DNA of 64,000 nucleotides from Geosiphon pyriformis uo1 (lineage: Eukaryota; Fungi; Glomeromycota), in assembly GCA_016748015.1 (NCBI GenBank), contig JAAOMT010000040.1, forward strand, positions 62,001 to 126,000, read 5' to 3'. The notes under the pieces were generated by a model. The model saw nothing but the letters and a program-made list of their open reading frames with translations, searched no databases and had not been told where the DNA came from. Positions 22,201 to 61,275 of the stretch are shown here, piece by piece (positions within the stretch are counted from its first letter, which is position 1; every line of letters begins with the position of its first letter). The position numbers and the translations under genes were made by a program.

Positions 22201-22494
22201 ATTTTTTTATTATTAAAACATTTTATTGAGTAAAGTTCAATCACTATTTAATATATAGAATTAGACTAAATAAATAATTTAATTTATATAATATAAAAAT
22301 ATAATTAAATATAATAATTAGATTATATAATATTTTAAATTATATAATATTAAAAAATTTGTTAAAATATTTAATAATTTGTAATTAACTAAAATATATA
22401 TTTAGTTTACTAAAATATTAAAAAAAAATATTTAAGATTATAAAATAGCATTATAATAAGTTATATAAAAAAAAACTTTATTTTTTAAAATTTT

Positions 22495-29500: not shown

Positions 29501-29660
29501 TATCTAACAGAATTATAAGTTTTGTATATGTCTTAAAGCACTAATTAAACTTTTCTGTTTTTTTCCAAAGCATTTTTCATAACTAATTTAATAGTAAAAA
29601 TAAGAAACTATGTAGATATATTTTTTAAAACTAAAAAATTATCTTTTTTGAGCATATTGT
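26530..29660 (-). mobile_element. Heavily decayed, 5'-truncated LINE ORF2 + 3' UTR
   Basis: Remnants of LWLVLQDMRKAYDSV (~29510-29560), SAFVNNII (~29170-29195), YLGIF (~28965-28985), C-terminal AIGFRFRIKFLFF...* (stop ~26635), and a decayed family 3' UTR. Confidence 0.75.
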
Positions 29661-29779
29661 TACCAGTAAAATTTTAGTTAGTAATTAACATGAAATTATC
29701 TTATAATTTCTATTATTAAATTAGTACATACTATTATTATTTCAATTATCATTTATTATTTAATCAAATTATTAAATAT

Positions 29780-33739: not shown

Positions 33740-34383
33740 GAGGTTGTTTTATATAACAGGTTGTTACAACTAGATTTATCTTTATATTTTAATTAGTTAA
33801 TATTATATTGATTTCAATAGAATAATTATTTCAGTAAAAGTTTCTATTATAATTATTAAAACTTTAAAGAAATTTAAATGTTTAATAGAATTTTAAAAGT
33901 TTAATGCTAATATTAGTTTATATGATCTAATTTTTAAGATATAAAAAGTATATAAACTTTATTTTGGTTAATAATAGTTTTTAAAACTTGGTATTTAATT
34001 AATAAATATATTAATTTGATAAGTTTTTTAACACTAATTATTTGGATTTGTTAATAAATATTAAATTGAAAAATTTTTTCAATTTTTAGCTTAATTTAAT
34101 ATATAAACAGACCAATAAAAATAAATAAAAATATAAAATTAGTAATATTAATAGAGTAATTTAAAAAAAGTTTAGCAGTTTGTCTTTGAATATTGCTTTA
34201 CAGATTAAAAATAACTTTAAATTTTGTAAAATAAAAACCAATTTCAATAATATGTAAATATTATTTAACAAAATTTTGCTTTTTGTAATTAATATTGTAT
34301 TTTTAAAAATATGGTCTTAATATAATAACTTGGCCAAAAGTATTATATTTTCTAAATTTTTTAAGTTAAAATTACTTTTATTT
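33740..34383 (+). mobile_element. Old host LINE, segment 1 (decayed APE C-terminal part)
   Basis: Remnants of TWSN..IDFILV, FFNT, LIYKQTNKNK*KYKI and SKFFKLKLLL, interrupted by copy B at its target-site duplication. Confidence 0.7.
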
Positions 34384-34482
34384 TACAAAAAAACAAAAAT
34401 AGAAAACTTCTTTCTCTCCTTCATCCCAAATTCCTGAAAAAGAGTCAAATTTTGAAAGAAGTTTTTTTCTGTTTTTTATATA

Positions 34483-36402
34483 TTGTCTTCCATTATTTCA
34501 CAAGAAACAAACTCTTTTGTTGTTGGTTTGGCTGCCACTATGAGTGGTCCTAGTGTTAAGAGAAGGTCAGCCAGAGTTTTGACCACTGGTTCGGTTGGTG
34601 GTGGTTCAGGTTATAAAATTAAGAAACCTTCTGGTGGTGCTAAGCTCTCAAGTAGTGGTACAACTCTTGAAAGTGGTGGGTCTGGTCGTGTGGTTGGGCA
34701 GTTTAATGGCATGGATACTGATGAAAAAGCTTCCGAAGGTGAAGGAGTACCTAATTCCAAGATGAATACGCCTCAAGCCAAGCATTTCAATAATAGTGCA
34801 ATTATTGGCTCTCCTTTCGGCTCTATTAATTATGACATGGAAGAGAAAGAGGAAGTTTTCCTTCTTCTTTGTAAGTCTTTCTCTTTGGATAAGGTGTAAG
34901 TGGATCCCAAAATTATTAAAACTCAAGTGGAAGTGACCGTAAAGAAATCATTCACTTTGGACATTAATCTTTCGGCTGTAGAAAAGAAATCGGCAACAGC
35001 CAAAACTCAGGTCATAAGAAAATTATTTTCAGGAATCAATGGTTTTGGGGGGGCCACTACCTCTTCAAAATTTGAAGGGATTATCTGATCAACGTTTACT
35101 TCATCAGAAAGCATGGAAAAGGCCGTGTCATTGGCCAGAGAAAATAACATCATAGTAAACAGTGATCTCAAGAGACAAGGAATTTACTCAGATCGAGCCA
35201 TAGTAATCAAGGAAATTTCTATGGATACACCAAAAGAAATGATTGTCACCGCAGTATCCAAGTTTGGAGAAATTAAGTCGATCAAAATCCAGTTGATTGG
35301 TTTATGGCAAAAGACTGTGGTAGAATTTGCTAAACTAGAACAGGCTGTGTCTTTGGCTGCTAGGTGGTTCTTTCTGATTAGTAAAGACTCGGTTTGTGTG
35401 GCTATGATGATAGACAATTGTGAAACTTGGGCATCTAGAGATCAGTTTAAGGCACTTTTGTTCACTTTGCCAGTGGAAACTACTGCTCATGATCTTGGGG
35501 ATCTTCTTGAAGGGGGTGATGGAAAAACTTGTGTCATAAATCGGTCATTGGAGACTGGTAATAGGGTCTGCTGTGCTGTTGTTTGTTTTAATTCTGATGA
35601 GGTTTTGGAGTTAGCTTTTCGCACAGAGCCAATCTTTGGTGGTGTGAAACTCTCATGGGCTAGGCTGGATTTGGTTCACTGTGAACAGTATAAGAAGTTC
35701 AGTCATTCTGCCTTGGAATGTAATACTGAGGTTGCGTCAGTTCTTAAACCTTCAAAGTTTTTTATAAAACCTGCCAACCTAGATACTTGTCTCTAGCTGG
35801 CCAAGTTGTATACAAAGAAAAATGTACCAATCTCTCATCCTGTTGTCTTTGGTGGCAAATCTTGGGCCCAAGTGGTCTCAGTTGCTTCAGTTTCTTATGG
35901 TTTTCATGCTGGTTCTGGTTCCGGTTCCCCACTTTCTGGTGCTCTGAGTTCGGGTGGGGCATCTTCTCCTCTACTTGTGGTCAATTCTTCTTTGGATGCT
36001 CACTTAGTGCTTCTGGAACGCTCTGTGAAGCTTTTGTCTGATCAAATTTTGGACATTTTTTCTTGTCTTGACAATATTGGTTCAATACCCTTGGCACCTT
36101 CCTCTTAAATGGTTCCTTCTGTGGTTGTTTTTCAGTCTCCAACTTCTGTTCCTCTTGTGGTTGCAAACTCTGACTTGGATTTTGACATGGCAGTTGATGA
36201 TTTTGTTGTCCAGCCTATTTTTTTCTCTCCAGGTGTTGCCGATTTGCTCTTAGGTCTGAGTAGTTCCAAAGTCCTGACTTCCAAAGTTGGTGGTCTGAAA
36301 TCGAAGTTGGTTGCCCTCGACATCTTCGTTGGTTTGATTTTGGCTAAGTTAGATCAGTTGTGTGCTGGCTCAGGTTCTTCAGTTATCTCTTCGTCCCAAT
36401 GA
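34483..36402 (+). pseudogene. LINE ORF1 (RRM-like x2, CCHC knuckle, coiled coil) with in-frame stops
   Basis: Five ORF pieces in one frame. AIVIKEISMDTPKEMIVTAVSKFGEIKSIKIQLIGLWQKTVVEF. CEQYKKFSHSALEC. Likely ATG at 34540. Confidence 0.88.
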
Positions 36403-39400
36403 CCAGTTTTATTTGGAAAATTGCCATGTGTAATGTTAGGAGAATGAACAATCCTGCAAAACAGGAGGACATTTTTTGTTGGCATAAGGAATCTGGTAGT
36501 TCGATCTCAATTGTTACAGAAACCAAGTTGTGTTCCAGTTCACAACCATAGATCATGAAAAAGTTTAAGAGTGTTCGGGTTTTTACATCTGGTCTGGATG
36601 TTGGGTTTTATGGAACTGGTGTGGCCATTTTTGTGAACAATTCTCTGGCTTGTCATGTTTCTAAAGTTGAAAAGGTAAAGGGCAGAGTTCTTTCAATTTG
36701 TCTTTTGTTCAAGAACAAGCTTTCTGTGTCTGTCATTGGGCTTTATGCCTGTGTGTCTGGTGGTGACTGTTTTGCTCAGGCTTCTGTTATTAATTCATTC
36801 ATTGCTGATACTGTCAACAAAAGTTCTTTTGTTGTTTTGGGTGGGGACTTCAATGAAGACAATTCAGTCAAGGGGGCGAGTCTTAAAAAATGTTTAGGTT
36901 TGGGTCTGGTTAATGTTTTTGGTGGTTATTCTCTAGCTAGGATTCCTACTTGGAGCAATTCAAGAGGCATTAGCAAGGTTTTGGACTATATTCTAGTTAG
37001 TGACTCTTTGATTTCAGCTGTCATGAATCGTGATGTTAGTTCTGTCTCAGAATTTTTTAACACGGATCACTTGGCTGTCTCGATGTCTATTGGACTGGGT
37101 GGTCTTCTGGATGCTCATTTGACCAGCATCCACAAGCATGCTAATAAGGATCACTGAAAATTTAAGATTAAGGATGCTGATGAGAAAAAGTGGGCACATT
37201 TCAAAGAACTTTCTGAGTGTGCACTGTTGGGTTCTCTGAATAGATTCAAGACGGCTGAGGATGGTAGCAACTTGGATGGAATGTGAGAAGTACTAGCTGA
37301 AGCCATAACTGCTTCTGCTGAAAAAAATTTTTCAAAACATTGGTATAGTGAATTTGATTGTGCTAAGAATAAACTTTCTTCTAAATTTTCCAGATTAGAG
37401 CTGTTGGTCGCCAAGTTATTAAAAGTGCTAAGACTGAATGATGCAGTGGGCTTTAATCATCTGGCTGATACTTGGTTTAAAGCTGACCCTTCCAAAGCTT
37501 CCAAAGTTTGTGGCATGATCGGGAATGGTGTGGGTTTTGCTGACTTGATAAGTCATTTTTCAAAGATTAGAAAGCAATATAGAAAGTCCAAATATTATGA
37601 ATCTGAAGTGGCCAAAAGATCTGCTATCAGAGACACAATTGATAAGCGTATAAAAAAGTTTAATATGAACAAAGGTGGGATGATTCGAAGCATCTTGGAG
37701 CAGCCCTTTCACAAGGTTGTTCTGGACTATTTGGTTGTTGGTGATTCTTTTATTTTGGAACCTAATGAAGTGAAGCTCAAGGTGAATGACATCATGGTTA
37801 ATTGGACCAGAAAGCGGAATGCTCTTCCTGTCCTGTTTGGTCCCTGGGCACAACAATATGCCCTTTTGGCCTATGTTAATGATGGTGCTTTTAGTCTGGT
37901 CATGTGTAATATTACCATGTGTGAGATGTCTTCAGTTATAAGCAATCTTCCTAATAGCAAAGCTGTTGGTTTGTCTGGTATCACCAATGAACTTTGAAAA
38001 CATGCTGGCTGTTTAGTTTTGGAGTGTTTGTTGTCTTTGCTGAATTCTTGTTTGTGTTTTGGTGATGTTTCAGTCCATTGGAAAGAGGCCTGGGTGTCCA
38101 TAATTCCTAAGCCTTATGATTGGGATGGCATTTTGTCAAATACATGGCCTATTGCATTAATTGAGACGGCCAGAAAGATTTTGTCAAAAGTTCTTTCAGA
38201 CAGGATCTCTCTTGCCTGTAGTAAGTTTAATGTTCTCCACAGTAACAACTTTTCTGTTCTCAAAAGCACTTCCACTCAGTCACCAATTTCAGCTGTGGGT
38301 TCAATTGTGGAGGATGTTTTGGAAAAAGGCCGTGAACTTTGGCTGGTTCTTCAAGACATGCGCAAAGCATATGACTCTGTTGGTTGGCCTTATTTGAAAG
38401 CTAGTTTACGCCGTATCAAAATGTGTGGCAAGTTCATCAAGTTTTTTGGCAACATTCACAACAATTGCTTTAACAGAGTCATGACAGATTTTGGCCTATC
38501 TGATGGATACAAAATTCTTGATGGTTTGAATCAGGGTAAAGTTTTCTCATCTCTTCTATGGAGAATTTTTTATGACCCCTTGTTATGTGAAGTTGCAAAA
38601 CAAGATCATTTGTGTGGTTATTGGATCAATTCAAACTTTGTGGCAAAGACTGGAAGGATTGAGACTAGTGGGGGTATAACTTCTTTTTTTACGGCTGGTG
38701 CCTTTGTCGATAACACTATTTGGATGGGAAATGGACAAGCCTCTACACAGCACATTCTTAATATGGCCAGCAAGTTTTTCCTCATCAATAATATTAACAT
38801 AAACAATGAAAAAATGGTTGCCATTCCTATCAACAAAAGAGTGGGGGTTCCTGTTTTGTTTATCAATGGCCAGGCTATCGCTGTTGTCAATCCTGATGTG
38901 AGTCATCGATATTTGGGTATTTTCTTGTCTACTGATGGTTTGTCTAAACTGAGTCTTGCCAAAACCAATTCAGATATTAGGTTCTTCTCAAATATGATTC
39001 TCCGGAAAACTGTCTCTGATAAACAATTCTCTTATCTGGTTTTAGCTGGTTTGCAGCCTATAGTCAGTTATCAGACACAGTTTAGTTTTGTTTCCAAAGC
39101 TGTTTGTCTAAAATGGAACGTTCTGATTAGAAAAAGTCTTAGGTTGAAAGCCAATTTGCTGAGAGACTTTCCCAATGAGGCATTGTACCACCCCTTTCTT
39201 TATGGACTGAAATCTTTTGAACAGTTGCAGGCTAAATGCAAGGTAGCTTCTATTGTGCAATTTGCGAATTCTTCTGGAATTCTTGGCTGTCTGTTCGAAC
39301 ATCAATTTTTGGATTTACAGGTTTTGTACTGGACTCTGCTGAATCCTCTTCAATATCCTGTTAAGCTGAGAGTAAACATTTCAAACAATTTTCTAGTGGG

Positions 39401-41084
39401 TGTAGTTCATATATTTCTTGACAACAAGCTGTTTTTGGATAACAGGCTTCCCTGTGTCTTTCGCTCTCCTGTCCATTTCCCAATGTCATTGGTATTGGGT
39501 GATTCTTTGTATTTCAATGTGGTTCACTCCTTGAAAATTGCTGGTGTGGCATATGGTAACCAACTTCTGGACAAAAAGAGTTCTGTTGTCAGTTGGCGTA
39601 TGTTTTGCTGATGGAAAAGACTTGGTTCTAGAGGCTCCATGCCTTTATGGTTTTTGAAAGCCTTTATTCATTTGAATAATTGTTTGCATGCTCCCCTTTC
39701 TGCGAGTTTAGCTTCTGTCTGTGCTAATGTTTTGGATTCAACATCTTTTGCCAATATTCGTGAGGAGATTCATGGATTGTGGGCTGATAAGATTGATGTT
39801 TATACTGATGGTTTTCTTAGAGGCTTGGGTACGTTTCAGGTGACGTGTGGTGCTGACACTTATTTTCCTAGCTTGAACAAAGGTTTAGGGGTGGAGGTAC
39901 ATGGTGTGCTGTCTTTGACCCTGGCTGAATTACAGGCTGTTGCTCTGGCTCTGGAGTGTGTTTCTGCCTCTGTTTTAGTGGCTTTATACACAGATAGTTA
40001 AGCGGCTATTGATGCATGTGTGGCCGAATTGGGTCTCTTATAGCCGGATTGTTGCAATAGTTGCTGGATAGAAAGGCACCATGTGGTTGATTTGATTAAA
40101 TCCAAAGATCTGACTGTCTGCTGGGTTAAAGTCAAAGGTCATGCTGGCATTGCTGGTAATGTTATGGCTGACATTTTTGCTGAACAAGCTGCACACTCTG
40201 GGGTCTTTCTTCCTGTCAGAATTAATTGTAGATATGTGATTGCTGATGGCAGGCCAGTTTTTGGTAATGCCTGCTATTTTGTACATAACATTTTTCATTC
40301 CATTTGCAAGTTTCAATGAGAAGTGGGTCCTGGCCAAGAGGTTTTGTCTTGTTTGTTTGGTCTGGTTGTCAATTGGAATAGTATCACTCTAGTTTGGCAC
40401 CCTGACTCTCATATGCTCTCTGGGAGTACGTGTCAAGCCACTGTTACTCTTCATATGTATTTCATAAAAGCTGTTCATTTCAAGTTGCCTGTTGCTGTTC
40501 GAAAGAGGCTATATAGTAAGGATTACTCTGATGTGGCATGTCTATTTTGTGGTGATGTGGAACTTCCCGATCATGACTTTACTTGTGTTAAGGATGCTTC
40601 TGTGCAGTCAAATATTTTGGGTGACTTTGGTGGTTTGTGGAAAACTCTAATGGGTCCTGATCTACTATTGCCGTCTTTTGTGTTGTGAGATCTCTCTCTG
40701 GAGGTGTTTGATGTTGGTTTGTATTCAGTTTTTTGCAAGGAATTTGTTCTCAAGAGTTGGATGGATGAGGCCATTGCTTCTCTCAGTGACAAAAAGAAAG
40801 CAGTCTCTGTGATAGTGGATTTCATCTGTTGTTTAGCTAAAAGTCATAGGACGAACCTTTGGTTTTTTAGAACTAAGTTCAAATCTGACATGGAGAGAAG
40901 TGGTTTGATTGGTAATGATGTTGTTGTGGCCAGTGCTCTTGGTGTGGGTGTTCTGTCTTTCTCAGCTAGCATGGTCTGTCTTACTGGTGTGTTGGATTCT
41001 CTTGATGTCAGTTTTGGTTTTAGGGATAGGTTTTTGTTTTTGTCTGGTGCTGTTCATAGGGTTAGTGTTTCTATAAGTGTATAG
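36399..41084 (+). pseudogene. LINE ORF2 (APE endonuclease, RT, RNase H, CCHC) with 9 premature stops and no frameshift
   Basis: WKIAMCNVR, VTETKL, GGDFNE, LDY, TDH (APE). LQDMRKAYDSV, GLNQG, AFVDNT, RYLGI (RT). VYTDG, AELQAV, WVKVKGHAGIAGN (RNase H). CLFCGDVELPDHDFTC. Confidence 0.95.
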
Positions 41085-41221
41085 TGTTGTCTTGATTGGC
41101 TTGAGTGGCTAGTCACATGTAGCAAATGTGTGAACCATGTTTAGTTGGCTACTTTTTTTTGTAACTTATTCTAGACTTTGGTTGGGCTGCACTCATTAAT
41201 AAAATAAAATAAAATAAAATA

Positions 41222-42409
41222 AAAATTACTTTTGTTTAAAATTTTGAAAAACTTTGAATTTTAATAAATAAATAAATCAAGTTTAATTTAAATTTAACAA
41301 TAAATTTTTAAAAGCTTTTGTTCTGTAGTTTTAACAATAGTATAATTAAACAATATTTAATATATTTTAAAAAAATTTATAAAGTTTATAAGATATTTAA
41401 ATTTAAAGCTGTTAAAAATTTATGTATTTAGAATACTATTATTAAATACATAAAAACTTTTACTAATAATAAAAATTTGATAATTAAAAACATATTAAAA
41501 CAGTTTATTAAAAAAATTGCTTTAAATTACTTAGTAAATAATAGAAAGTTAATATTAAAATCTAGTATAATTAAAAACAAAATAGATTTAATTATAAAAA
41601 ATTGAATTAAAAAACATATAATTAAAGATATAATTTTTTTTTACTAACAAAAACAATTTGTTTTTTTGGTTTATGTTAATAATAATGTATTTTCTAATAT
41701 TATAAAACAAATTATTTTAAATAAATTCTTGTGAATTATTAAAAGACTTTTTAAAAAAAACTACAGATTTTTTTAAGATTACTAATAAAATGTAAAAACA
41801 TTGCAATAATTTATTTTGGTTTGGCTTTTAAACATGTTAAATATATATTTACTAAAAAAGACAGTTCTTAATACTTGATAAAAAACATAAATCTCAATAA
41901 TTTCAAAGCTATATAAATAAAAAAATCTGATAAAAAATATTAAACCAATTGCTTTAATTAAAATTATAAAAAAAATTTTGTTGAAAATTCTATCTAATTG
42001 GATTTTTATAGTTTGTAACAAGTTTAAAGTTCTAAAAAAAACAACTTTTTAATATTAAAAGATATATTAATTTAATTTTTTATCTTTATTATTAAAATTG
42101 TTGTTAAAAATACTTTAAAAAAAATTAAAATATATAACAAATTTATCAAGTTTTATAAATATATTTACAATAATTGTACAAATAGAGTTATAATTAACAT
42201 TAAATTAATAAAAATTTATATTGTATATAATAATTTAAATTAAGATAAAATATTTTTATCTTTTTTTTAAAGAGTTTTTTATAATTTTTTTTTGTATAAA
42301 ATTAAAAAAATATAAATTTTTATATAAGTACTAAGTAGATTTTAGATTTGTTATAAAAAACTGGCAAAATTAAATCTAATATAAAATTAATATCTTATTT
42401 AACTGTTAA
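41222..42409 (+). mobile_element. Old host LINE, segment 2 (decayed RT N-terminal half)
   Basis: Continues segment 1 across the duplication. Remnants KKIALNYLV...IKNKIDLIIKN*IKK, KPIALIKIIKKILLKILSNWI and KTGKIKS, ending just before the AFVDD motif. Confidence 0.8.
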
Positions 42410-45400
42410 GATAAATTGTGTCAATACACAATTTTTATTATTCTTTTTTTCTCTCTTACTTCCAAAAAAACCCCAATGAGCACTTTTTCTGAGAAAAGAA
42501 GTTTTTTGTTTTTATCTTGTTAATATTATATCAACATTTCTTTAACTAATAACCCTTTTGTCATAAATTTGAAGGCTGTCTCTAGTAGCAGCATGTCTAG
42601 TAAGAAGACTCCTAAAAGTGTGTTTCACAGTTCTGCTGGTGGTTCCTTTTCACAAAGAAAAAAAACTTCTCTTGGAAATATTAAATATTCTGGTGATAAG
42701 AAGGATATCTCTTTGAAGTCTGGTTCTGGTGCTAGTGTATATTTTGATGTAGAGAGCCTATCTGGTGATGATAAAGATATTAGTATGTCTGGTGGTTTTG
42801 ATGGTTCTCTCTTGGATTCGGCTGTTAATACTCTCAAAGTTAAATGGGTGAATACTGGTGCAAATTTTGGTTCTCCTATTGGTTCTTCTAACTTTGAAAT
42901 AGATGAAGAGGTGAAGTCTCTCCCACCACCCCTTAAGAAAAAGATTCCTTTAGATAAGATTTAGATTGATCCCAAGATCATCAAAATTTCTGTAAAAGTG
43001 TCAGTCAAGAAATCATTTGCTTTAGACATCAATCTTTCGGCTGTAGAAAGAAAATTGGCTACATTAAAAACTCAGTTTGTTAGAAAATTTTTTTCAAAAA
43101 TCAATGGTTTTGGAAAGGCCACTACCCTCTCAAAATTTGAAAGAATTATCTGATTGATGTTTATTTCATCAGAAAGCATAAAAAAGGCTGCATCATTGGC
43201 CAGAAAAAATAACATCTTAGTAAACAGTGATCTTAAGAAACAAGAAATTCACTTAGATCGGGCTGTAGTAATTAAAGAAATTCCCATGAATACGCCAAAA
43301 GAAATGATCATCGCTGCAGTATCCGAGTTTGGACAAATTAAGTTGATCAAAATCCAACTTATTGGTTTATGGCAGAAGGCTGTGGTAGAATTTGCCGAAT
43401 TAGAACAGGCTGTGTCTTTGGCTGCTAAGTGGTCCTTCCTAATTGGTAAAAATTCTGTTCATGTTGCTATAGCGGTAAAAGATCGTGATACTTGGGCATC
43501 TAGAGATCAATTCAGAGCACTTTTGTTTACTTTGCCTGTGGGAACAACTGCCCATGATCTCGGTGATTTATTGGATGGAGCTGGTAGGAAAACTTGCATA
43601 ATCAACCATTCCTTGAAGACTGGTAATAGGTTTTGCTGTGCTGTGGTTGGCTTTGAGACTGATGAAATGCTGGAATCTGCTTTTTGCACGGAACTAATCC
43701 TTGGCAGTGTGAAGCTTTCTTGGGCTAGATTGGATTTGGTTCAGTATGGACAGTGTGAGAAATTCAGTTATTCTGTTTTGGAGTGTAATGCTGAGATCAC
43801 TTCTACTTTTAAGTCTTCCAAGTCTTTTAAAAGGGTTGTCTCTGATGAAAACCACCTCCAGTTGGCCCGATTGTATGTGAAAAAAGGTGTGCCTATTTCT
43901 CGACTGGTTGCTTTTGGTGGCAAGTTATGGGCCCAAGTAGTCTTGTTTACACCCTTGTCTAATAATCCTCATTTTGGTTTTAATCCTGGTTTTGGTTCCT
44001 TCTCTTCTAATGCCTCAGGTGTGATTGGTCCCTCTCCTCATATGGTTCCTGTTAGTACATCTTTGGAGGCTTGTTTTGCTTCTTTGGAGCATTCTGTGGA
44101 GCTTCTTGTGGATAAGATGTCTGGTATTGTGAGCAAACTTGAAAATTTGGTCTTGATGCTCCTAGCTCTTGCCTCCTCTTCTCAGAATTTGGTGGTTCCA
44201 GTTGTGGCAAATGTGGAAGTTGATTCAGACATGGCTCTAGATAATCCTAAGCCAGTGCTTCTTCCCTCTTTTTTGGTTTCCTTTAATACTTCAGAATTGG
44301 GTTCAAGTAGTTCAAAAATTTTAACCTCAAAAATGGGCTGTTTGGAGTCAAAGTTGATGGCTCTTGAGGCTTTGGTTTGTTCAGTTTTGGTGAAGTTAGA
44401 TCAGATGTGTATTGGCTCAGGTTCTGCGGTTTCTTCATCATCTCAATGAGTAGTTTTGTGTAGAAAATTGTGACATGCAATGTTAGAAGGATAAACAATC
44501 CTGCTAAGCAAGCTAATATTATTCATTGGCACAAAGATATGAACAATGTGATTTTTATAGTTACAGAGACAAAGTTAAGGTGTAAGGTTCACTCTTAGAT
44601 TGCTAATAGGTTTTCAGGTGTGCGTGTTTTTGTCTTTGGCTTGAATTTGGGTTATCTCGGTTCTGGTGTAGTTATCATTATAAATGTTGCTTTGGCCAAA
44701 CACATGTATAGGATTTCTGAAGTTTTTGGTCATTTTTTTGCTATCAAGCTGCTCTTCAAGAACAAACTTTCTGTTTCTGTTTTAGGTTTGTATGCTGATG
44801 CATTTGTGTCAATGCATTTCTCACAAGCTGATAAAATAAATGCTTTGATTGCTGGTGCTGTAAATGAATCTTCTTTCATAATTTTGGGTGGTAACTTCAA
44901 TAAGGATGGTTCTCGTAAGAGTGCCAGCTTCAAGAAATGTGGTGCATTAGGCCTGGTTAACCCTTTCATCAATAATGTATTTCTGAAAACTCCAACATGG
45001 AGTAATTTACGGGGAGTGGTAAAAACAATTGACTATCTGTTTGTGTCTCTCAATTTGGTCAATGCTATAATGGATCGCAATATTCTGGGTGTGGTCAATT
45101 TCTTTGATACTGATCACCAAGCCGTTTCCGTGTCACTTGGTTTGGGTGGTCTTTTGAACACTCATTTGTGTTTTATTCGCAAACAGACCAATAAGGATCA
45201 TTGAAAATACAATTATAATAATGCTGGTGGTGCTTTGTGGTCAAAGTTTAAGGAAGAGATGATGGCTAATGCTGCCATGTTCTTTGATGAGTTTTTGGAT
45301 GTCAAAAGGCATTCAGATCTGGATGTTATGTGGGATGCTATTCACAAAACCTTGTGTTTTTTAGCAGATGTGGTTTTCAAAAAAAAATGGTTTAAGGAAT

Positions 45401-48400
45401 ATGATGGTGTCTTTACCAAGATCTCATCCAGGTTTCATAGATTGGAGCTCCTGGTGTCTAAATTGGTTAAAGCTTCCCAGTTAATCGATCGTGATGAGTT
45501 TATTTTGCTGCTGGATACTTGGATTCGGCTTAATTTGGTTAATGCTTCATTGGTAAAATTTTTGTTTCTCTCTGGTTCCCCATTGAATGATATATAGTCT
45601 GTTCTTTTCAAGATCAGAAAATTTTATTGTGCTGGTAAGTTATTAAATTCGAAATGTGCTGAAGAATCTTGTATCAGGTCTGCAATCAATAGGAGGATGG
45701 AAAACTTCAAGTTTAACAAAGATCACACTATCAGGAGTGTCTTGGAATGTCTCTTTTGCAAAGTCATTTTAGATCATTTGGTGGTGGGTAAGGAGTTGTT
45801 CTTGGAGCCTGATCCTGTTAAAAATAAAGTGGATGAGATAATGGAGGGTTGGATGCAGAAGCAAGATGTGGTTCTTGATGTGCCTGAAGATTGGTCCTGT
45901 CAGTATCAGCTTTTGGAACATGTTTTTGATGGTGCCTTTGCTAATGTTATGGACTGTGTTAATTTTGTTGAATTATTTGGTGTGGTTTCAAATCTGTCTG
46001 ATAGGAAGGCTGCTGGTCTCTCGAGCATCTCTAATGAACTCTGGAAGCATTGTGACAATTCAGCTCTTGATATGCTCTTGGTGCTCATCAATTCTTGTCT
46101 TTCTTATGAATCTGTTTCCAGTGCTTGGAAAGAGACTTGGGTGTCGATGATTCCTAAGCCTTATGAATGGGAAGGCATGCTCACTAACACTTGTCCTATT
46201 ACTTTGATTGAGACAGCTTGCAAAATTCTTTCCAAGATTCTTTCTAACAGGATTTCATTCACGTGCAGCAAGCATAACGTACTTTGTGATGACAATTTTT
46301 TGGTTTTAAAAGACACTATGACTCAGTTCCCCATTTTTGCAGTTAGTTTGGTAATCGAGAATGCTATAAAAAAGAACCATGAGCTCTGGCTGGTTTTGCA
46401 AGACATGCAAAAGACTTATGATTCTGTTGGTTGGGACCATCTTAGGAATAGTCTGGTTAGAATCAAAATGTGTAGCAAGTTTATTTGGTTTTTTGGGAGT
46501 ATTTATGGTGGTCGGACCAACCAGATTATGACCAATTTCAGGTTGACAAGTGATTATCATGTGCATAATGGTTTGGACCAAAGGGAGGTTTTCTCATCTC
46601 TCTTTTGGCAAATATTTTATGATCCTCTTTTGTGCAAAGTTAAGAGACAGAAGAGTGTGTGTAGATGCTGGTTAAATTCTCATTTTGTTTTTAAGACTGG
46701 TTATGTAGAATCTCAAGCTGGGTTAACTTCTTTCCTTGCTGCCAGTGCTTTTGTGGATGATATGATTTAGGTTGGTAGTAGTCAGATGGTAACACAACAC
46801 ATTCTAAATGTGGCTAGCAAGTTTTTTAGGGTTAATAACATTTCAATTAACAATGATAAAACTGTAGCCATTTTTATTAACTGCCAGGTTACAAATTCCT
46901 CTCTTTTAATAAGTGGATTACCTATCTCTGTAGCCAATAAGGGGGAATCTCATCAGTATTTGGGTATCTTTTTGTCCACTGAGGGCCTTTTTAAACCCAG
47001 TCTGGCCAAAGCTTACTTGGACATCAAGTTTTTTGCCAATCTTGTGTTAAAAAAGACCATCTTTGATAAACAATTTTCGTATTTGGTGTTTTCAGTTCTT
47101 CACTCTATTGTGAATTACAGAACTCAGTTCAGTTTTGTTCTTCCTAGTATGTGTACCAAATGAGATACTATGATTCACAGGGGTTTGAAATCAAAATCTG
47201 GTCTGCCTTTAGATTTTCTCAATGATGTGCTGCATCACCCCTCATTTTATGACTTGAAAACTTTTGAACAAATCCAGGCTGAGCACAAAGTAGCATCTGT
47301 TGTTTGTTTTGCGAATTTGGTTGGCATTTTGGGTCATTTGTTTGCTTATAGATCTCATGACTTGCAAGTTTTGTGTTGGCATCCAATTCATCCCTTAAAT
47401 TTCCCTATTTGTATTGGTATTGGTGTTTCTAATAATTATTTGGTGGGCTTGGTTCGTATTTTTCATGATTATAATCTTTCTCTGGATGGCTTCAGAGCCA
47501 ATGCTTTTTGTCTTCAAAATGGAACCCCTATGGTGTCTGTTCTTGATGAGTCTAAATTTGTTAGATGTTTTCTGTCTCTTTGGCATTATGGTATTGTTTT
47601 TGTGGACCAGTTTCAGAACCACAGGGGAGCTAATTTTACTTGGGCAACTTTTAAACATTGAAAGAGATTGGACCCACATGAACCAGTTTCTGTCTGGTTT
47701 GATCTTTCAGTTGCTTTTATTAATATGGTGGCTCCCATCTCTGTTACATCTTCTTCTGTTAATGGGATTGTCACTCGAAATATCCTGGATTCAATTAAAT
47801 TTAATAAGATTTGTGGTCATCTGCTTAATGTCAGTTCTGATAGTATTTTGGTATTTACTGATAGTTTTTTGGCCAGTTTGGGTACTGTTGGTATGCGGGC
47901 TGGAGTGGCCACTTTTTTTAATGGTGTTGATTTGGGTTTAGGTGTTGTAGTTTCTGGTTTGGTGTCTTCTACTATGGTGGAATTGTAGACTATTGCTTTG
48001 GCTCTTGAGTGTGTTCCCCCTTCCAGTTCTGTTCATTTGTTCTCTAACAGTCAGATGGCTTTGGATGCATGCAGATCTGAGCTGGGTCTAGTGGTTCTGG
48101 ACTTTCGAAATCAATGCTGGTTAGAATGCCATCACATTTCCAACTTGATTTATAATAGGAATTTGAACGTCTGTTGGTTTAAAGTCAAGGGACATTTTAG
48201 TGTTGTGGATAATAAGTGAGCAGATGCTCTTGCTGCAGCTGCTTCTACGTCTGACCTTTTTTTTCCTTTGCATTTGGATGAGTACTATATTTTGGCAGGT
48301 AATATAGCCATTTCTGGAAATTCTAGACATTTTGTTCATAACATTTTCTGTTGTATACATCATGTTGATTGAAAGGTTGGCTCTAGTTCTAAAATCTTGG

Positions 48401-49200
48401 TCTCCAGTTTGCATGGTAACATAGACTGGCGTAGGTCTTCACCCATGTAACATCTTGATATGTACATGACTGCTGGTTTCACTAGTAAACGTTTTGCTGA
48501 TGCTTGTATTATTGGCTGCCTGTGGCTGTTCATAAATGCCTTTATAGTAGGTCTTATCCCAGTGTTTTGTGGTGAAGTTGAATTTTCCGATCACGTTTTC
48601 TCATGTGGCTCTGATACTGCTATCTGCACCCAGCTGTTGAACACACATGCAGCTATCTAGGGAGCCCTCTCTGGTTTATCTTGGTCGTCGTCACGTCTTA
48701 TACAGCTTATGCTTTCTTGTGCCTCTGATGCTTTAGTGTGTTCAGCGTTTTGTAAGGAGTTTATGTTCAAACTTTGTTTTCAGGAAGTGGTTTCAGTTTT
48801 TGGGAACTCCAAAATTGCTTGTTGTAAGGTAATGGAATTTGTGCAAAATTTCTGTCTTGCTTTTAGGAATGAGGTTTGGTTGGTTCGTGCAAGTCACTGT
48901 GTTTTGATGAAAAAACGTGGTCTGATTTCTAGTAATGGTTCGGTTCTTGATCTGGTGCATGGCCTTTCTTCAGTTTTCTCTGCTGGGGTGATAAGGCTGT
49001 TGGGTATTGTGGAGGCTTTTGGTATTCACTTTGGCTTTCGTACACCTTGTTTATTTTTTTCAGACATTGGAGATTCTGTATCAGTTATTATAGATGCTTA
49101 GTGTTGTTCTGATCAGCCTGAGTGACTGGTCACGTATAGAAAATGCATAATTCATGCCTAGTATTTAGACCTCACTCATTAAATAATAATAATAATAAAA
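42410..49200 (+). mobile_element. Full-length LINE copy C
   Basis: Target-site duplication AACTGTTAA at 42401-42409 and 49201-49209. ORF1 ~42569-44449, ORF2 44446-49101 (AFVDDMI retained) and (TAA)n tail. Many in-frame stops and two small compensating deletions near 48510-48570. Confidence 0.95.
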
Positions 49201-49694
49201 AACTGTTAATGTTTTTATTAATAATATAATTTGAATTAAAAAAAATTTTTTAATAACAGATAATAAAATAATTTTTGGTAATATGTATTATTTTATTAGA
49301 TTAATAAATAATATAGTTATGTGTTTTTTATAAAAAGTTAATTTGAATTCTAGAGTTATAGTTTTTTATTTGTTATTAATATTAATTAGTACTATATTGT
49401 TTTAATTTACCATTTTAATTTCTATATGGCTATTTAGTATATAAATAAGTTTACTATTGATTTATACATACATATAATAAAAACTTTTTATAAAAAATTG
49501 TTTATTACTGTTAGAAATAGTTGTATAATAACAAATATATAAATATATTGTGTATATATTATAAAAAATAAAGTTTTTAAATCATATTTTTATTTATAGT
49601 TTAAGTTTTTTTGTTTATTAAAAATTGTTAAATAAGTAGTTTTTTTGTTAAAAATCTTTAATTAGTATAAATTTTACATTATTAATAGTATTAT
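49201..49694 (+). mobile_element. Old host LINE, segment 3 (decayed AFVDD motif, internal deletion, then post-RNase H/CCHC region)
   Basis: TVNVFINNII*I (= AAGAFVDDTIW) followed by remnants of LVWHPDSHM, LPVAVRKRLY and the CCHC finger. Confidence 0.75.
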
Positions 49695-52600
49695 TATTTT
49701 TTTATTAATTTTTAATGAGTGAGACCCAAAAGCCACCTAGTGCAATACATCAAACTAAGTGATCTAAACTAGGTGCTAATCATGCACTTTCTACATGTGA
49801 CCAGTTACTCAGATTGATTAAAGCAACACTACAAATCTATCAGAACAGAAACCATACTATCTATACCAGAAAAAAAGCAGCAATGTTTATGAAAACCAAA
49901 GCAGACACCAACTGTCTTAGCAATCCCAAGCAACCTAATCACTCCAGCAAAAAACATACATGACAAACCACAAGTCACAGGATACACAAAACCATCAAGT
50001 GGAATTAAACTGCCTTTTTTCATTAAAGCCCTATATTTAGCTCTAACCAACCAAATATCCATGTGGTGAGCAGCACCTAATTCTTGAACAAAATCAACAA
50101 TAAATTTTCCCACAACTTTGGCATCACCCAGAATGAATGAAGCTTTCTGAACCCAATCTCTGAACACAAAGTTTTTGCTCATAGTAGTATACAATATATC
50201 ATCAGATGTGCACAGAGAGAGCACCTGTGAGACACGAGATGAATGTAAGCCCAATCCAGAAACACAATACCACTTGGCCAGATAAGACTTGAGAATATCT
50301 ATATGAGCATCAGAATTAAATGTACAAACAAAAAAGTGGTCAGAACTTTCCACTTCACCACAGTGCAGACACAAGACACTTGAGTAGATCTTACTATACA
50401 AACATTTCCATATAGCAATCAGGAGACAGTGGTGGAGAGCCTTTAAAAAATAAAAGTGCAAACTAGCCATAGATTTACTGGTAAAGCTGGTCACCATATG
50501 GAAGTCAGAGTGCTACACCAAAGCAGTATGAAACCAGTCTATATCACCAAGTAAACTGTTATTAATAACATTAAAACCAGGACCAATCTCCTAATGAGCA
50601 TGATTAACAGATCTGAAAATCTTACGAGCAAGATAACAAATGTTCTCAAACACCACCATCCTGTTAGCCTTGATAAATCTCTTCTTAACCAAAACAGGAA
50701 GTGCCAAAAAAGAGTTCACAGCCAGACTGGCTAACTCATCAGCACATTCATTACCTATAACACCTGAATGTTTTTTTACTTTATGCCAAAAAACATCAAG
50801 CTGCTTTCCTTTAACAAAATTGATAATGCTATGCTGCTCCATCCAGCAGTGGTTGTGGAAATTTGAAGACACCAGAGCAGATTCAGTCACACACACATCC
50901 AAGGCAGCCTGACTGTCTGAATAAACCACTACTAAACTGTCAGAGAGAACACACTCCAAAGCCAAAGCAATTGCCTGCAGTTCCACCATAGTTGAAGATA
51001 CCAATCCACCAACCTTAGCACTAATACTCAGATCCAAATCTGAGAAGTAAGCAGCAGCACCACACTTCATTTCACATGAACCTAAATCTCTTAACGATTC
51101 ATTAGTGTAAACACTAACAACCCCCAAATTTGTAGAAGAGAGACACTGGCTCAATCTGGAAACCGTACCCAAGCTGCAAACATCCATAGCCTGCAAATCT
51201 TCAATGCACAAATCATCAGAAATAGAAGATCAATCCAAAAAGTCACAAACCAAAGTGAACCAAAGAGGGACAGAACCCCTTAGATCAAGTTTTTTCCAAT
51301 GACAAAAGTTTTTTCAATCAAAAATCAAACTTTTTTTGGTATATAACTGCTCAGCAAAGACGACCCCAAACTTTTTAAGAGAAAAAGAAACATTATAAAA
51401 CAAAGAAGCTCTCAGAACTATAGATATTGGTGTTCCACCAGAAAAGTGGAATGCAGAAACAGAAAAATTGTCGAGAGACATGTTATAGTCCAAAAAAATT
51501 CTAACAACATCTGCCAAAAAATTATTGACCAGACTAATACACAACCTAATCAAACAACATAGAGGGTGAATAGGTGATCAACCCAAAACCTGAAAATTCA
51601 GAGACCTATGATTGAACAAATAACCAAGAACACCACCAGCATTTGAAAAACACAATACAGAAGCCATTTTGCACTCAGTCTGCAACTGCTCAAAAGATTT
51701 CAAGCCATACAAAAAAGAATGGTAAAGAGCCTTATTCGGAAAGTCTCTTGAAAGACAAGTCTTAAGTCTTAACCTCCTTTTAATCAATGTATCCCATTTT
51801 ATATACACATTCCTAGAAATGAAGTTGAACTGAATCCTATAATTAACAATGAGTTGCAATACAGCTAATACTAGATAAAAAAATTGCTTGTTCAAAATAG
51901 CTTTTTTAAGAGCCAAATTGACAAAAAACTTAACATTCATATACATCTTAACCAAACTGGGTTTGGAAAAACCCTCAGATAACAAATAAATGCCAAGATA
52001 CTGATGAGACTTTTTCCTGTAAGCAATTGAAATCAGCAGACCATTAATTGACAATGATGCATTACTAACTCTCTAATTGATAGGAATAGCCATAGTTTTT
52101 TTGTTATTAATAGAAATGTTGTTTACTCTGAAAAATTCACTTGCTGTGTTCAAGATATACTGAGTGGCAGCCTAACTGCTATCCACCCAAATAGTATCAT
52201 CTACAAAAGCACCAGCAGCCAAAAACAAAGTCAAACTGCCTTGGTTTTCTATCCTACTTGTCCTAACTACAAATTTAGTATCAATTTAGTATTCACACAA
52301 ACTTTTTTGTTTCTTGACCTCACACAAAAGAGGGTCATAAAAGATCTTCTACAACAAAGAAGAGAAAACCTCATCTTAATCAAGACCATCATGTACCTGG
52401 TACCTATTAATTAAACCAAAATCAATTATAACCTAATTAACACAGTCATTGTAAATAGAACCAAAAAATCTAATAAAATGCCCGCACATTTTGATCTGAA
52501 CCAAACTATTATATAAGTGATGTCAATCCACAGAGTCATAGACTTTACACATATTTTGTAGCACAAGCCAAAGTTCATGATCCTTCTCCAAAGTGTTTTC

Positions 52601-55600
52601 AACAACCAAACCAATGGCAAAAATAGGAGATTGAGTAGTAATGCCCTTAAACACAGAAAAATTGTTTCCACAAAGTACATTGAATAGACTATATGTTGAT
52701 GAAATCTTGGCAGACAGCAACTTAGAAAGAATTCTATGAGCAGTCTCAATTAAAGCGATCAGTTTAGTATTTGTTAAAACATCCTCTCACTTATAGGGCT
52801 TGGGAATTATTGATATCCAAGCTTCCTTTTAACAACAGGGAACTGACTCACACACCAAACAAATGTTCAGAAGATCCAGAAGCAAGCTTAGCACAGAACC
52901 ATCACAATGTTTCCAAAGTTCATTTAAAATGCCAAACAAGCCAGCAGCTTTACCATCTGGTAAATCCTTAATCATATGTATCAAGTTATCCAAACTGATA
53001 GCATTTATCACACCAGAAAAAGCATTATCATTAACATAATCCAATGGCAGATATTGATGCTGCCACAAATTAGGAACACTTTTTAGCATGGTCTTTTTTC
53101 TCATCCAGTCCTTCATTATACCATCCACCTTATTCTTAACTTCTACTGAATCCAAAAGCAAACCACCATCAGAAACCAAATAATCCAATACCACTTTGCA
53201 GAATGGACATTCCAAAACACTATGGATTGTGTGGTCTTTGTTAATCACAAAACTCTCTATTCTTCTTTTAATAGCTAATCTAATGCTTGACTTCTCGGCT
53301 TGCAAAGACTCAGCAAGCTTAGAGGCACGATAAGATCTTCTCACACCACAAAGAGCAGAATAGACACAATTCAAACTCACACCAGAACTTACAAGATCCC
53401 AAACAACAAAAGCTTTGTCACTATCTATAGAAACCCAACATCTTAACAGAGACTTAAACCTGTTAAAGTCTGTCTTGTAAGAAGTCTTAACAATTTTCGA
53501 AACCAAAATCTCCAAGTTATGTAACTTGAAAGATTTTTTGGTAAACACCCTATTATAACCTTTAAATCATTTCTTCTTGAAAGCACCATTAGCTGAAAAA
53601 ATCATCACTTTGTGAACAATATCTCACATAGCATCCAGATCAGAGAACTTCATGGCTGTCTCAAACTCGTCCAAGAACATGGCAGTATTGGCTGCAGTAG
53701 TATCCTTAAAATCACTCTATTTTGCTTTATCCGCACTTTTGACATCAAACTTCTAATGATTTTTATTTGCCTGCTTGCATATTAAACTCAAATGAGTATT
53801 AAGCAAACCACTCAGACCCACGAAAGCAGAAACAGCTTTGTGATTGGTATCAAAATAGTTCTCAACATCGGCCACACTACCATCCATTACAGCATTGACC
53901 AAACTTGAAAAAATAAGAATATAATTGAAAGCTTTAGTGATACCATGAGAATTGATCCATGTAGGCATCTTGACAAACTTCCCCTTAGAGAATTAACTAA
54001 ACCCAAATCAAAGCACTTCTTGAAGCTAGCACACTTTCGGGCCCTGTTTTCATTGAAATCACCACCCAAAATAATAAAAGAGAACTTATTTACTGTCTTT
54101 GCAATAAGAGAGTTGATTTTACCAGCCTGAGAGAACCAAACCACTGACAAAGCACCAGCATAGAGTCCCAAAATCAACACAGAAAGATTATTCTTGAAGA
54201 GTAGTTTGAGAGAGAGGAGTCAACCACAAACTTTGGAAACCTTATATATATGTCTTACCAAAGAATTGTCCATGATAATTGCAATACCAAAACCCAAATG
54301 ACTAGAGTCCAAACCAGAAGTGAAAACCTGGACACCATCAAATTTATTCATGATTCATGAGTGGATCTTGCTCCTCAACTTAGTCTCAGTAACAATAGAA
54401 ATCAAATTGTTTATCTCTTTATGCCAACAAATTACATTATCCTGTTTTGTAGGATTATTCATACCCCTAACATTACATGTGGCAATCTTCCAAACTAGAC
54501 TGGTCATTGAGAAGGAGGTTTGGAAAATACACTGCCAGCCAAAACTGAACTTTCAAATCTTGCTGTAAGACTTAGAACTGAAGCAAAAAGTCCTTCTAAC
54601 ATGTTTTCCAATCTTTTTACTTTAGGAGAAGCAGAAAAATCCAAAGTTGTAGCAGTTTTACCACTTGTGGCCTCACCCAAATCCTCTTTCATCACTATAT
54701 TACCCACCCGATCCTGTGATGAGGAGGTTACCAGCAGCTGACATCCAGGACTAGGCTGGAAAACTGTTAGCATAAATGAATCCAATCTCTTAGCCAACTC
54801 ACCAATTTGTCCTACAAGGCTGGCAAGACTGCTTTTCAAAACAGCAAACCTTTTTTCAACATCACTCATATCAGAAAGAGTAGGTTTCATCTCCAAAGAA
54901 GAGCCAAAATTGACTAATACTTTTTGCACAGAGAGAGGAAGAAAAACATTTCCACCAGCAATTTTTACCCAAAAAATCCCACCAAAAGCAACAGAACGAG
55001 CAATTGGAGCTAAACACTTGGCATAGATGGTTGCCAATCTGCTTTTATCTATGTCTGAGAAAGGTCTACGAGAAGGTTTCCCAGAAGAAAGATTCTCACC
55101 CACAGTACAGCCCAAAGATGTATGACCTATTTTCCCATACTCAACACATTTAGAAAAACCCAAAAGAGACCAATACATATTTACACCTCTTAAAACTGGA
55201 TTAGTTCTCATAACAGCATTCAAGAAATTGGCCGATTCAAAACAAACAACAGCATATCTGGCCTGAGCATATATAATAGAATGATGATTTATTGTATATG
55301 TTTTTCCACTCACAGAGCCAATATAATTCCAGATGTCATAAGCAGTCATTTCTATTGGCAGAGTATAAAGCAAAGCCCTATGTTGATTTCTCGTGTTCCA
55401 TAATTCCTTGTCTTGATCAGTTCTGGCCACATGCATAGCATTCTTCCCAATCAGAATAGACCAACAAGCTGTGACTAAATCAGCCTGTTCACTCTTACTA
55501 AATTTAACTATAGCCTTTTGCTACAAACCCACCAACTGTATTTTGATTGACACCACCACACCAAAACCAGATAGTGCAGTGCACACAGCTTCAGTTGATG

Positions 55601-56449
55601 TTTCAACAGAAATTTTTTTTAAAACCACAGTCTAATCTGAATGCCCAGATGATTTTTTAAGATCAGAGTTTACTAAGATCTTTGTCTCTTCAGCTTTTTT
55701 AGAAGCCTGTGCCAAACTCAATTCAGAAGTGAATATTGCTCTGATGATCCCAGCAAATTTTGAGGGGGTAGAAGTCCCCCCAAAACCATTGATTTTTGAA
55801 AACAACTTCCTGACTGCTACAAGTTTTTCTTGAGCAGATTTCTTAACAACATTGTCCAAACTGATATCCAAAGTAAAAGATTTCCTAACAGAAACATTGA
55901 CCAAGTTTTTCAAAAGAGAAGAGAGAACTACAAGTTTGTTTAACAGTATGTTATCATTATCATTGTTCAAGAAGTTAATTTTCTCCAGCAGCTTTCTCAG
56001 TACTCTTTTGGTAATAGTTTTTGAACTTTTAGGCATTTGTTCCAAATTCTTTCCAGTGAAAGCTCTATTATCTTCACAATCAAAGCTGGTTTCTTCAACC
56101 AAACACTTTTCCTCCATGTCCATACTATCAGACTCAATGGTATCACTGGTCTCAGAACTCCAAGAACGACTATTTGACACTTTAGTAGTAGGGAATTTTC
56201 AATTACCAATGTTATCCTCCAAAGCACCATCTCTTTTTTTCTTCTTAGGTTTAGTTGACTTGACACCAATGTTGAAACTAAGTTCCATAATAAACTTGTT
56301 CAGAACAGCAATACTAGGATCAATGGTGGTTTTATAATCAAGCAAAAATGATTTAGATTTAGCATGCTGAATGGTGAAAAACTTCTTTCAGAAAAAAATT
56401 TTTGGCTTTTTTTTTGGGGGATTTGGGATGTACGAAAAAAAAAAGTTTT
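49695..56449 (-). mobile_element. Full-length LINE copy D
   Basis: Target-site duplication TTAATAGTATTAT at 49682-49694 and 56450-56462. ORF1 ~56330-54504, ORF2 54507-49829 (AFVDDT, WHKVKKHSGVIGNECADEL, CLHCGEVESSDHFFVC). One frameshift near 53970. Confidence 0.95.
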
Positions 56450-56950
56450 TTAATAGTATTATAATTGTTAATTTTATGTTTTTTTAATATTAGTTTGTAT
56501 ATAGTTTTATATAAGAAATTTATTTTTGAGAATTAATTAATAAAAACCAAAATAACTTTTAATAATATTAAACCTATTATATTAAAGTTAATTAATTTTA
56601 TGTAGAAGTTAATTATTAGCCATAAAAATTATATATAATTATTTAATTCAAAGTTACAAATAATAATAAAATAAGAAAAAATTTTTAACAGTAATATTAT
56701 ATAATATTGTATATTTGTTACGAATAATTAAAAGTTATACTATTAATTTTGAATTAAAAATTAATTATGTATTTTTTTTTGGTATAGTTATTAATATATT
56801 AGTTAATATAGTTATATAATATTGTTTTAACTGATTGAATAACTAGTTACATATAAAAAATATGTAAATTATATTTAATTTAGAATTCTAAATAGTTGTA
56901 TTGTATTAAATAATAATAAAATTTTACTTATTAAATAAATAAATAAATAA
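56450..56950 (+). mobile_element. Old host LINE, segment 4 (decayed ORF2 C-terminus, 3' UTR, TAAA tail)
   Basis: LYIVLYKKFIFEN and ...FFGIVINILVNIVI*, then a decayed 3' UTR (ACTAGTTACATATA...GTTGTATTGTA...TTACTTATTAAATAAATAAATAA). Confidence 0.75.
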
Positions 56951-59170: not shown

Positions 59171-60140
59171 TCAAACGTTGACGTTGGTATTGACAGCACC
59201 TTGATTTCGTCGCAATATTTGGGTTGGCTGTTTTTTTTGTTCAATAAGCTCATTTGGTTCTAAAGAAAGTGTCGATTTTCGAATTTCTCTTTGTTGAGTG
59301 GTAAAAGTTGGCGATAATAAAGACACCTTGTGATTATTGGTAGTTTCTCGTGCCACAGATTTAGCAGCGCTTTTTTTCAAAATTTCTTTTTCTTTATCTC
59401 CTTGACTAATAATAACAGTGCCCTCTAGACTGGAATTAAACAATTTCTTTCCCTTATCCTGAGATGAGTCATAATGACTTCTTCCTTGATCACTGTTCTT
59501 TCCTTTGGTCTTTTTCGGTGAATTAATAGCAAGACTCTTGTCATTTATATCTCGATTTGTCCCAAAAATTTTTTGCCGCGCAGCGTAATAATCAGCCTCA
59601 CGCTTTTCCAAAGATCTTTCTGAGGGATCTAAATGTGATTGAGTTCTCCTCATCGAGTCCGACTCTTTTGGTCGTTTTAATACCTGGAGCTTGTATGAAA
59701 CAGTTCGATGAGGTAGACTCGATTAGGAATAAAATATCTCTTAGAGTAGCAAAGAATAGAGAGTTTCGTTAAAACCTACCTCTGGAACATAAGTTGTTCG
59801 TGCCGTATCAGTTCTTATGATTATAGGTTGAACATGGGTATTTCTAAGTACAAAAAGAAAATAGGTGGAAATCAACTTGAATTTAGCGCGATAAAAAGAA
59901 GTCTAAATATATATACATACGCCTCATTCCAAATTTGCTTGTTCTTAGAATGCTCGTCTACAATTTTTATAGGTTTTGGGTCAAACTGAGTATTGATTAC
60001 AAAGAGTATGGTTTGAAAGAAAGGGTGAAAACGAAATAAACCAAATGATGAGAGTAATAGCCACATATTAATGTGATATAGAAATTTACCCCAGCATCTG
60101 CTGCTGCTTCCCAGTCATCCCATGGATCTTCGTGAGCCAT
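59171..60140 (-). CDS. SUZ-domain RNA-binding protein (SZRD1-like), 4 exons
   Basis: Exons 60140-60090 (MAHEDPWDDWEAAADAG), 59985-59921, 59843-59780 and 59689-59171 join in frame. SUZ motifs VLKRP and SLEKREADYYAARQKIFG. Confidence 0.88.
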
Positions 60141-60999: not shown

Positions 61000-61275
61000 T
61001 TTTTTTTTTATATTTAACGAGTGAAGCCCATCCCTTATCTAGTACAATACAACAACTACGTGTTCCAAACTAGACGCAGATCACGCACTTACTACATATG
61101 ACTAGCCACTCGGGCTGATCAAGGCAACACTATGAATCTATTCTTACATTAACAACATCTCCGACACCAGAGTAAAAAGAACACGGCAAGCGCGTTCTAA
61201 AAAGCACACCGAACGCTTCATAGACACCCAGCAAATGTACCGTCCCATCCGACAGTGAGACAGACAAACCACGAA
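61000..61275 (-). mobile_element. Very short 5'-truncated LINE copy E (last 47 codons of ORF2, 3' UTR, A-rich tail)
   Basis: RGLSVSLSDGTVHLLGVYEAFGVLFRTRLPCSFYSGVGDVVNVRIDS* (stop 61132-61130) followed by the family 3' UTR. CpG-rich. Confidence 0.92.

Follow-up and report, generated by a model that had tools for sequence, protein, structure and literature searches.

Does a dead LINE draw further LINEs into itself? The question is raised by a locus of the fungus Geosiphon pyriformis, in a stretch of 64,000 nucleotides that we call the window (all coordinates below are window positions). Along this locus, the GC content goes from 12-14% in four spacers to 36-40% in three blocks of about 6.8 kb each. 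A sequence-only reading had proposed that the spacers are pieces of one decayed LINE, that the blocks are full-length LINEs of its own family inserted into it at TT|A sites after it had decayed, and that dead, AT-converted LINEs act in this way as a sink for new insertions.

The nest

We confirm that one decayed host LINE is interrupted by three other LINEs, which we name B, C, and D, and that the nest is real. Its parts are as follows.

33740-34383, plus strand: host ghost piece 1, decayed APE and linker region; 5′-truncated start, left edge approximate; its 3′ end is the left copy of the B duplication (34368-34383)
34384-41221, plus strand: LINE B, 6838 bp, 40% GC; ORF1 and ORF2, both with stops, the latter with APE, RT, RNase H region, and CCHC at 40539; (AATAA)n tail
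41222-41237, plus strand: right copy of the 16-bp target-site duplication of B, with one A/G mismatch to the left copy
41238-42409, plus strand: host ghost piece 2, decayed linker and RT, reaching just before the AFVDD motif; its 3′ end is the left copy of the C duplication (42401-42409)
42410-49200, plus strand: LINE C, 6791 bp, 38% GC; a separate subfamily, stops in both ORFs; (AAT)n tail
49201-49209, plus strand: right copy of the 9-bp duplication of C, identical to the left copy, in decayed form
49210-49694, plus strand: host ghost piece 3, AFVDD region, junction of a deletion of about 1.5 kb at about 49242-49259, then CCHC region; its 3′ end is one copy of the D duplication (49682-49694)
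49695-56449, minus strand: LINE D, 6755 bp, 36% GC; a third subfamily, oriented against the host, both ORFs with stops
56450-56462, minus strand: second copy of the 13-bp duplication of D, paired with 49682-49694
56463-56950, plus strand: host ghost piece 4, ORF2 end, 3′ UTR, and (AAAT)n tail

Joined, the four spacers give a host ghost of about 2.8 kb on the plus strand, with 12% GC and 5′-truncated inside the APE. The spacers were aligned to young copies with a scoring that permits C>T and G>A, using shuffled sequences as control (piece 1 falls outside the span of the truncated copy A described below). They align in the plus orientation only and in order, with scores of 147-662 versus 61-85 for the shuffles, at about positions 2380-3022, 3076-4315, 5832-6290, and 6324-6825 of B. 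This collinearity with ORF2 bears out the proposed nesting of three LINEs in a decayed plus-strand LINE. The order and the total of about 2.8 kb had been read correctly, but an internal deletion was overlooked and the RNase H of the family went unmentioned: the joined host is missing about 1.5 kb (B coordinates 4348-5862, the end of the RT and the RNase H).

The duplications lie where they had been placed, 16 bp at B, 9 bp at C, and 13 bp at D, and they are not chance matches, since the host reading frame runs on across them. A target-site deletion at C is also rejected. The break of the host deletion lies 30-50 bp downstream of the C duplication, and the frame first runs on through the AFVDD region, so the C duplication is real. 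A convincing target-site duplication of the host ghost itself was looked for and not found. The 5′ junction between host and C is bridged with zero differences, and at single-copy depth, by a contig of a public DNA run, which is probably the assembly's own sample. The nest region was not found in the public RNA runs searched.

The LINEs and their subfamilies

B and C (plus strand) and D (minus strand) carry ORF1, APE, RT, RNase H, and a CCHC motif. The term full-length is right for their size, but all three are broken, with stops in both ORFs. In profile searches of ORF2, RVT_1 is over the cut-off and Exo_endo_phos just below it (E 6e-5), with the APE motifs visible in the alignment. The tails are A-rich, there are no LTRs, and the duplications vary in length from 6 to 16 bp. 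An ORF2 with APE followed by RT, together with tail and duplications, identifies an APE-type non-LTR retrotransposon (LINE). The nearest solved structure to the RT is L1 ORF2p (E 7e-8) and then R2 (3e-4), both of them weak matches; the APE sequence had no match in the PDB. The RT piece of B has at least 120 protein relatives, and all those listed come from Geosiphon pyriformis.

B, C, and D are indeed clearly diverged from one another, as had been noted: their pairwise identity is only 56-60%. The host has a transversion distance of 0.20-0.22 to B, C, and D, equal to all three, and its nearest relative is another ghost in the window, F (26540-29700), at a distance of 0.155. Judging by these distances, the host and its three guests are different subfamilies of one clade. 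The phrase "own family" then has to be read as own clade, not own subfamily.

Other LINE remains are found in the window. A young LINE, A, at 22470-26420 on the minus strand, is 5′-truncated with 40% GC, and has a 778-codon open piece with RT and RNase H. It sits between a tract of 7% GC and the 3′ end of ghost F, and no duplication was called for it. Two LINE ghosts on the minus strand, at 14480-21000 (22% GC) and 26540-29700 (17% GC), have no LINE insertion inside either, and form with the 12% GC host a decay series. A young LINE 3′ stub of 275 bp lies at 61000-61275 (minus strand) in DNA of about 9% GC. At 464-1953 and 62280-63242 there are decayed copies of another repeat, which also interrupts one of the LINE loci that we fetched (L026). 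The window has four gene pieces as well.

3389-4339, minus strand: citrate synthase gene piece
7382-8074, plus strand: Erf4-like gene piece
12853-13722, plus strand: DUF7918-like gene piece (weak)
59174-59722, minus strand: SUZ domain gene piece

How dead copies lose C and G

Among 15 copies of the D subfamily, C>T changes occur at 0.19 versus 0.010 for C>A, and G>A at 0.18 versus 0.007 for G>T. Transitions thus exceed transversions at C and G about 15-20 fold, and the CpG observed/expected ratio is 0.07-0.15. The C>T rate depends on context (CG 0.51, CC 0.25, CT 0.22, CA 0.20) and is faster after a pyrimidine. The host is much further along: at columns invariant in young copies it shows C>T at 0.63 and G>A at 0.73, while 88-92% of A/T is retained. 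Ghosts E and F are intermediate between the young copies and the host. The decay is flat along the elements (0.16-0.22).

RIP, as in Neurospora, erodes both strands of repeats in one direction, by C>T and G>A, with a preference for CpA; its classical form involves a RID/Masc1 methyltransferase and a premeiotic sensing of homology. The decay in Geosiphon resembles RIP in its direction, its substitutions, and its effect on both strands of repeats. It differs in that there is no CpA preference (CA is the slowest context and CG the fastest) and in that it is graded, from 40% to 12% GC. Classical RIP is therefore rejected, even though C>T and G>A transitions dominate. No RIP signature has been noted in Gigaspora or Mucoromycotina (bioRxiv 2021.03.30.436303). 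The cytosine methyltransferase family PF00145 has 10 exon matches in Geosiphon, on six contigs (C657, C702, C371, C666, C646, and C692), with two separate loci on C657.

Insertion after decay

The C duplication has the same decayed pattern on both sides, for which the chance would be 0.01-0.06 had the duplication preceded decay. This supports the earlier suggestion, and the decayed letters shared between duplication copies show that the insertions came after the decay of the host. At 7 of the 8 nested sites that can be aligned (B, C, D, L007, L008, L010, and L015, with L013 as the exception), the junction carries T or A in the ghost in place of a C or G of the young copies; the alignments at B and D are weak. 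Such letters are to be expected given that two thirds of C and G are lost, so they identify the sites as products of decay without showing that these were chosen over older sites.

Could the flanks have decayed faster because of the insertion? The C/G letters within duplications are nearly all concordant between the two copies, with one discordant letter, at B; this and the flat decay along the elements argue that flank decay is no faster after insertion, and we reject that possibility. The argument from concordant letters is weakened by the fact that calling a duplication favours matching copies.

Insertion bias across the genome

The genome that we searched has 128.3 Mb in 792 contigs, and the window is positions 62001-126000 of its contig C708. 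Our sample of sites is the D subfamily plus the window, with 14 other full-length copies that all belong to one subfamily. Short duplications were identified by eye in AT-rich surroundings, and some of these calls could be mistaken. All 14 of these full-length D copies have 200-bp flanks with 4-15% GC; of the old non-genic bins in the window, 36% are this low in GC. Half-decayed ghosts, with 17-23% GC, make up about 64% of those bins, and none of the 14 sites is inside one (P about 6e-7, with the window as background). The AT tracts have about 10% GC and are mostly 0.5-3 kb long; median GC in the flanks is 0.07-0.08 next to the junction and has climbed to 0.23-0.28 by 1.3 kb. Seven of the 14 copies lie inside collinear ghosts of the clade and the remainder in AT tracts without detectable LINE origin. 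The ghost-derived half is close to the fraction that ghosts make up of the AT DNA in the window, and with only 7/14 sites in ghosts, a preference for LINE ghosts over other AT deserts is rejected.

A larger count is obtained from LINE 3′ ends located by a 14-bp motif, which occurs 285 times genome-wide (a control motif, 2 times). A 16-bp run of A/T is found past 59 of the 285 ends at +30 (a few of these are long tails) and past 48 at +150. The background is 2.27% of all genome positions, or 5.9% of old non-genic window DNA, the latter taken from one window that was picked for the finding. For the ends of an LTR family, the corresponding count is 16/833, or at most 3.8% if half of the ends face inwards (Fisher P=6e-9 versus LINEs); this control was read at offset +4, differing from the LINEs, and the family is at least partly younger than the LINEs. 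LINEs are thus about 7-9 times more frequent in AT deserts than the genome average would give, and they exceed the LTR family there at least 4-fold. The LINE bias is real and general, it differs between element types, and the attractor is an AT desert of any origin. What remains of the proposed sink is the excess in AT deserts (17-21% vs. 2.3%), but not a preference for decayed LINEs.

How unusual is a host hit three times? We estimate roughly 1,500 young LINE ends genome-wide (800-4,000, with a wide error, as the motif captures 5/27). In a rough Poisson model, AT targeting results in about 3-200 triple hits, about 16 of them with 1,500 copies and an assumed 15 Mb of desert, versus 0.2-20 under uniform insertion depending on copy number, or 0.3-1 at about 1,500 copies. 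With about 16 such hits expected under AT targeting, the host requires no special property, and its triple nest is what the bias to AT deserts ordinarily yields.

Several features of the fetched loci are recorded here as side observations. At L005, L008, L016, L017, L018, and L020, several insertions occur within a few hundred bp of the 5′ or 3′ end of another LINE, in the short AT tracts that separate elements. The 5′ junctions of L004, L005, L007, L008, and L010 have 5-17 extra letters between the left duplication and the LINE 5′ end, which fits untemplated additions. L010 and L011, on different contigs, have an almost identical 5′ flank, either a segmental duplicate or an assembly overlap, and were counted once. 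Young LINE copies are themselves interrupted by other repeats (L020, L024, L025, and L027, also L019, L022, and L026), four of them by the LTR family counted above; many of its 833 end-motif matches come in pairs spaced by about 9.3 kb. LTR elements go into young LINEs that are rich in GC; the fetched loci and the window show no LINE in DNA of this kind.

The signal at the nick site

The nick consensus of human L1 is TT|AAAA, and a TT|A or TT|AAAA-like preference had been proposed for this family from the three junctions in the window. We compared the starts of the duplications with random positions in the same flanks (n=14). The duplication starts with A in 14/14 cases (P=0.004), and a T|A step is present in 12/14 (P=0.02). 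For TT|A we see no significant excess beyond what the local AT content gives (6/14 vs. 3.8 expected, P=0.16), and the same holds for TT|AA in this small sample (5/14 vs. 2.5 expected, P=0.08); nor does GC dip at the junction relative to the rest of the tract (0.090 vs. 0.099, P=0.36). The proposed preference is thus not supported, and we reject a TT|AAAA consensus, since only T|A is significant in these few sites. The three junctions in the window overstate the consensus, given that TT|A is found at only 6/14 of the other copies. With TT|A unenriched and no junction minimum, the sequence signal at the nick is weak.

Decay changes the supply of such steps. Relative to young copies, the host has about 3 times the density of TA, 6-8 times that of TTAA, and 9-27 times that of TTAAAA, which is enough to explain a several-fold insertion bias.

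Explanations for the bias

We consider it probable that C/G decay into AT tracts combined with a target preference of the LINEs is the best explanation, with ghosts collecting later insertions and selection adding to the effect. Dead Geosiphon repeats lose C and G through C>T and G>A changes whatever the context, as their substitutions show, down to about 10% GC. APE-type LINEs would integrate by target-primed reverse transcription, for which a T at the primer end, pairing with the A-rich tail, would suffice; the T|A step agrees with this, and the enzyme step would be that of known LINE biology. The bias to long tracts of about 90% AT would then come from a several-fold higher density of such steps in DNA that is probably more accessible. 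Ghost LINEs gather later insertions because they are one common kind of AT tract, and the host took its three insertions, from three subfamilies, once it had decayed. Selection against genic insertions presumably contributes to the pattern.

An alternative, tolerance and age alone, has LINEs inserting nearly at random, the genic insertions being removed, at a time when neutral DNA was mostly AT desert and the GC-richer repeats had yet to arrive. This agrees with the fact that other repeats interrupt or cut 7 of the 25 fetched loci, one LTR family accounting for four of these, so that part of the present GC-rich repeat DNA is younger than the LINEs. Tolerance has been invoked for AT blocks (Rouxel 2011, PMC3105345), the lack of TT|A enrichment is as expected, and 0.2-20 triple hits could arise genome-wide without targeting. 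But the ghosts of 17-23% GC predate the insertions, are neutral, and form the larger part of the old non-genic window DNA, and yet they took none of the 14 sites; and both the A start and the T|A step exceed the local background. We regard this alternative as rather unlikely, although it keeps weight given that LTR elements interrupt young LINEs and that the neutral background is one selected window.

Alternatively, the cause could be a chromatin domain instead of the sequence: a silenced or nucleosome-poor domain would draw or keep LINEs and decay fastest, AT content being a marker that may be acquired in part after insertion. A choice at the scale of whole tracts (hundreds of bp), with no fine-scale GC minimum and with flank GC rising away from the junction, is compatible with such a domain. 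The concordant C/G letters of the duplications and the flat decay go against it, less strongly than they might considering the calling bias, and we find this improbable. Least credible, and very unlikely in our estimation, is a host-selected defence in which hypermutation is kept partly for the decoy targets it makes and dead LINEs draw in their own kin in particular. That one 2.8-kb ghost holds three subfamilies, that 7/14 other copies lie in ghosts of the clade, and that decay made the junction letters could all suggest it. However, half of the sites are in AT tracts without detectable LINE origin, much like the ghost share of window AT DNA, and about 3-200 triple hits are expected by chance under AT targeting. 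Returning to decay plus target preference, the loop it produces would most likely be a by-product of the two, and not a purpose-built defence.

Relation to known systems

The idea of such a loop is not new, and has been published for RIP fungi (Winter 2018, Rouxel 2011). The "safe-haven" hypothesis for Epichloe festucae states that later elements prefer RIP-decayed AT-rich blocks, away from genes (Winter et al. 2018, PMC6218096). It was proposed there as an untested alternative to selection, using LTR-type examples, and a test was called for. The likeness to Geosiphon is close: C>T decay turns dead transposons into AT-rich insertion targets, and nested repeats are the evidence. Epichloe is a RIP ascomycete with LTR-type elements, whereas Geosiphon offers LINEs, in Glomeromycotina, with all-context decay and with evidence from junctions and counts. 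We put at about even the chances that a safe-haven loop in Geosiphon acts by targeting, in which all-context, non-RIP C>T decay would make both the deserts and the junction letters that LINEs choose, with LTR elements entering GC-rich young copies.

For the AT blocks of Leptosphaeria maculans, a "positive reinforcement loop" based on tolerance has been described (Rouxel et al. 2011, PMC3105345). There too, elements nested in decayed elements build AT-rich, gene-poor blocks; but these are mostly LTR elements with rare self-nests, and the blocks have about 34% GC and span tens of kb, compared with about 10% GC, mostly 0.5-3 kb, and common same-clade nesting in Geosiphon. Hotspots of nested insertion are documented for human transposable elements (Levy et al. 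2010, PMC2836564). The Geosiphon LINEs resemble human L1/Alu in being APE-type, with an A-rich tail, 6-16 bp duplications starting with A, AT-rich targets, and nesting in older elements. They differ in that only T|A is significant, the element has an RNase H, and the targets come from genome-wide decay.

Our literature search, which did not include the original genome paper, found no description of a LINE sink for Geosiphon, nor for the LINEs of Glomeromycotina. The papers proposing the loop left open the choice between insertion preference and selection for nested repeats in AT-rich fungal DNA. With roughly 1,500 young LINE ends, duplications that can be read, and ghosts across all stages of decay, Geosiphon makes the question countable within one genome, and would also take the loop outside RIP and outside Dikarya. 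The Geosiphon nest is a real and clear instance of a loop known until now as a hypothesis, seen here in a new lineage and under another mode of decay.
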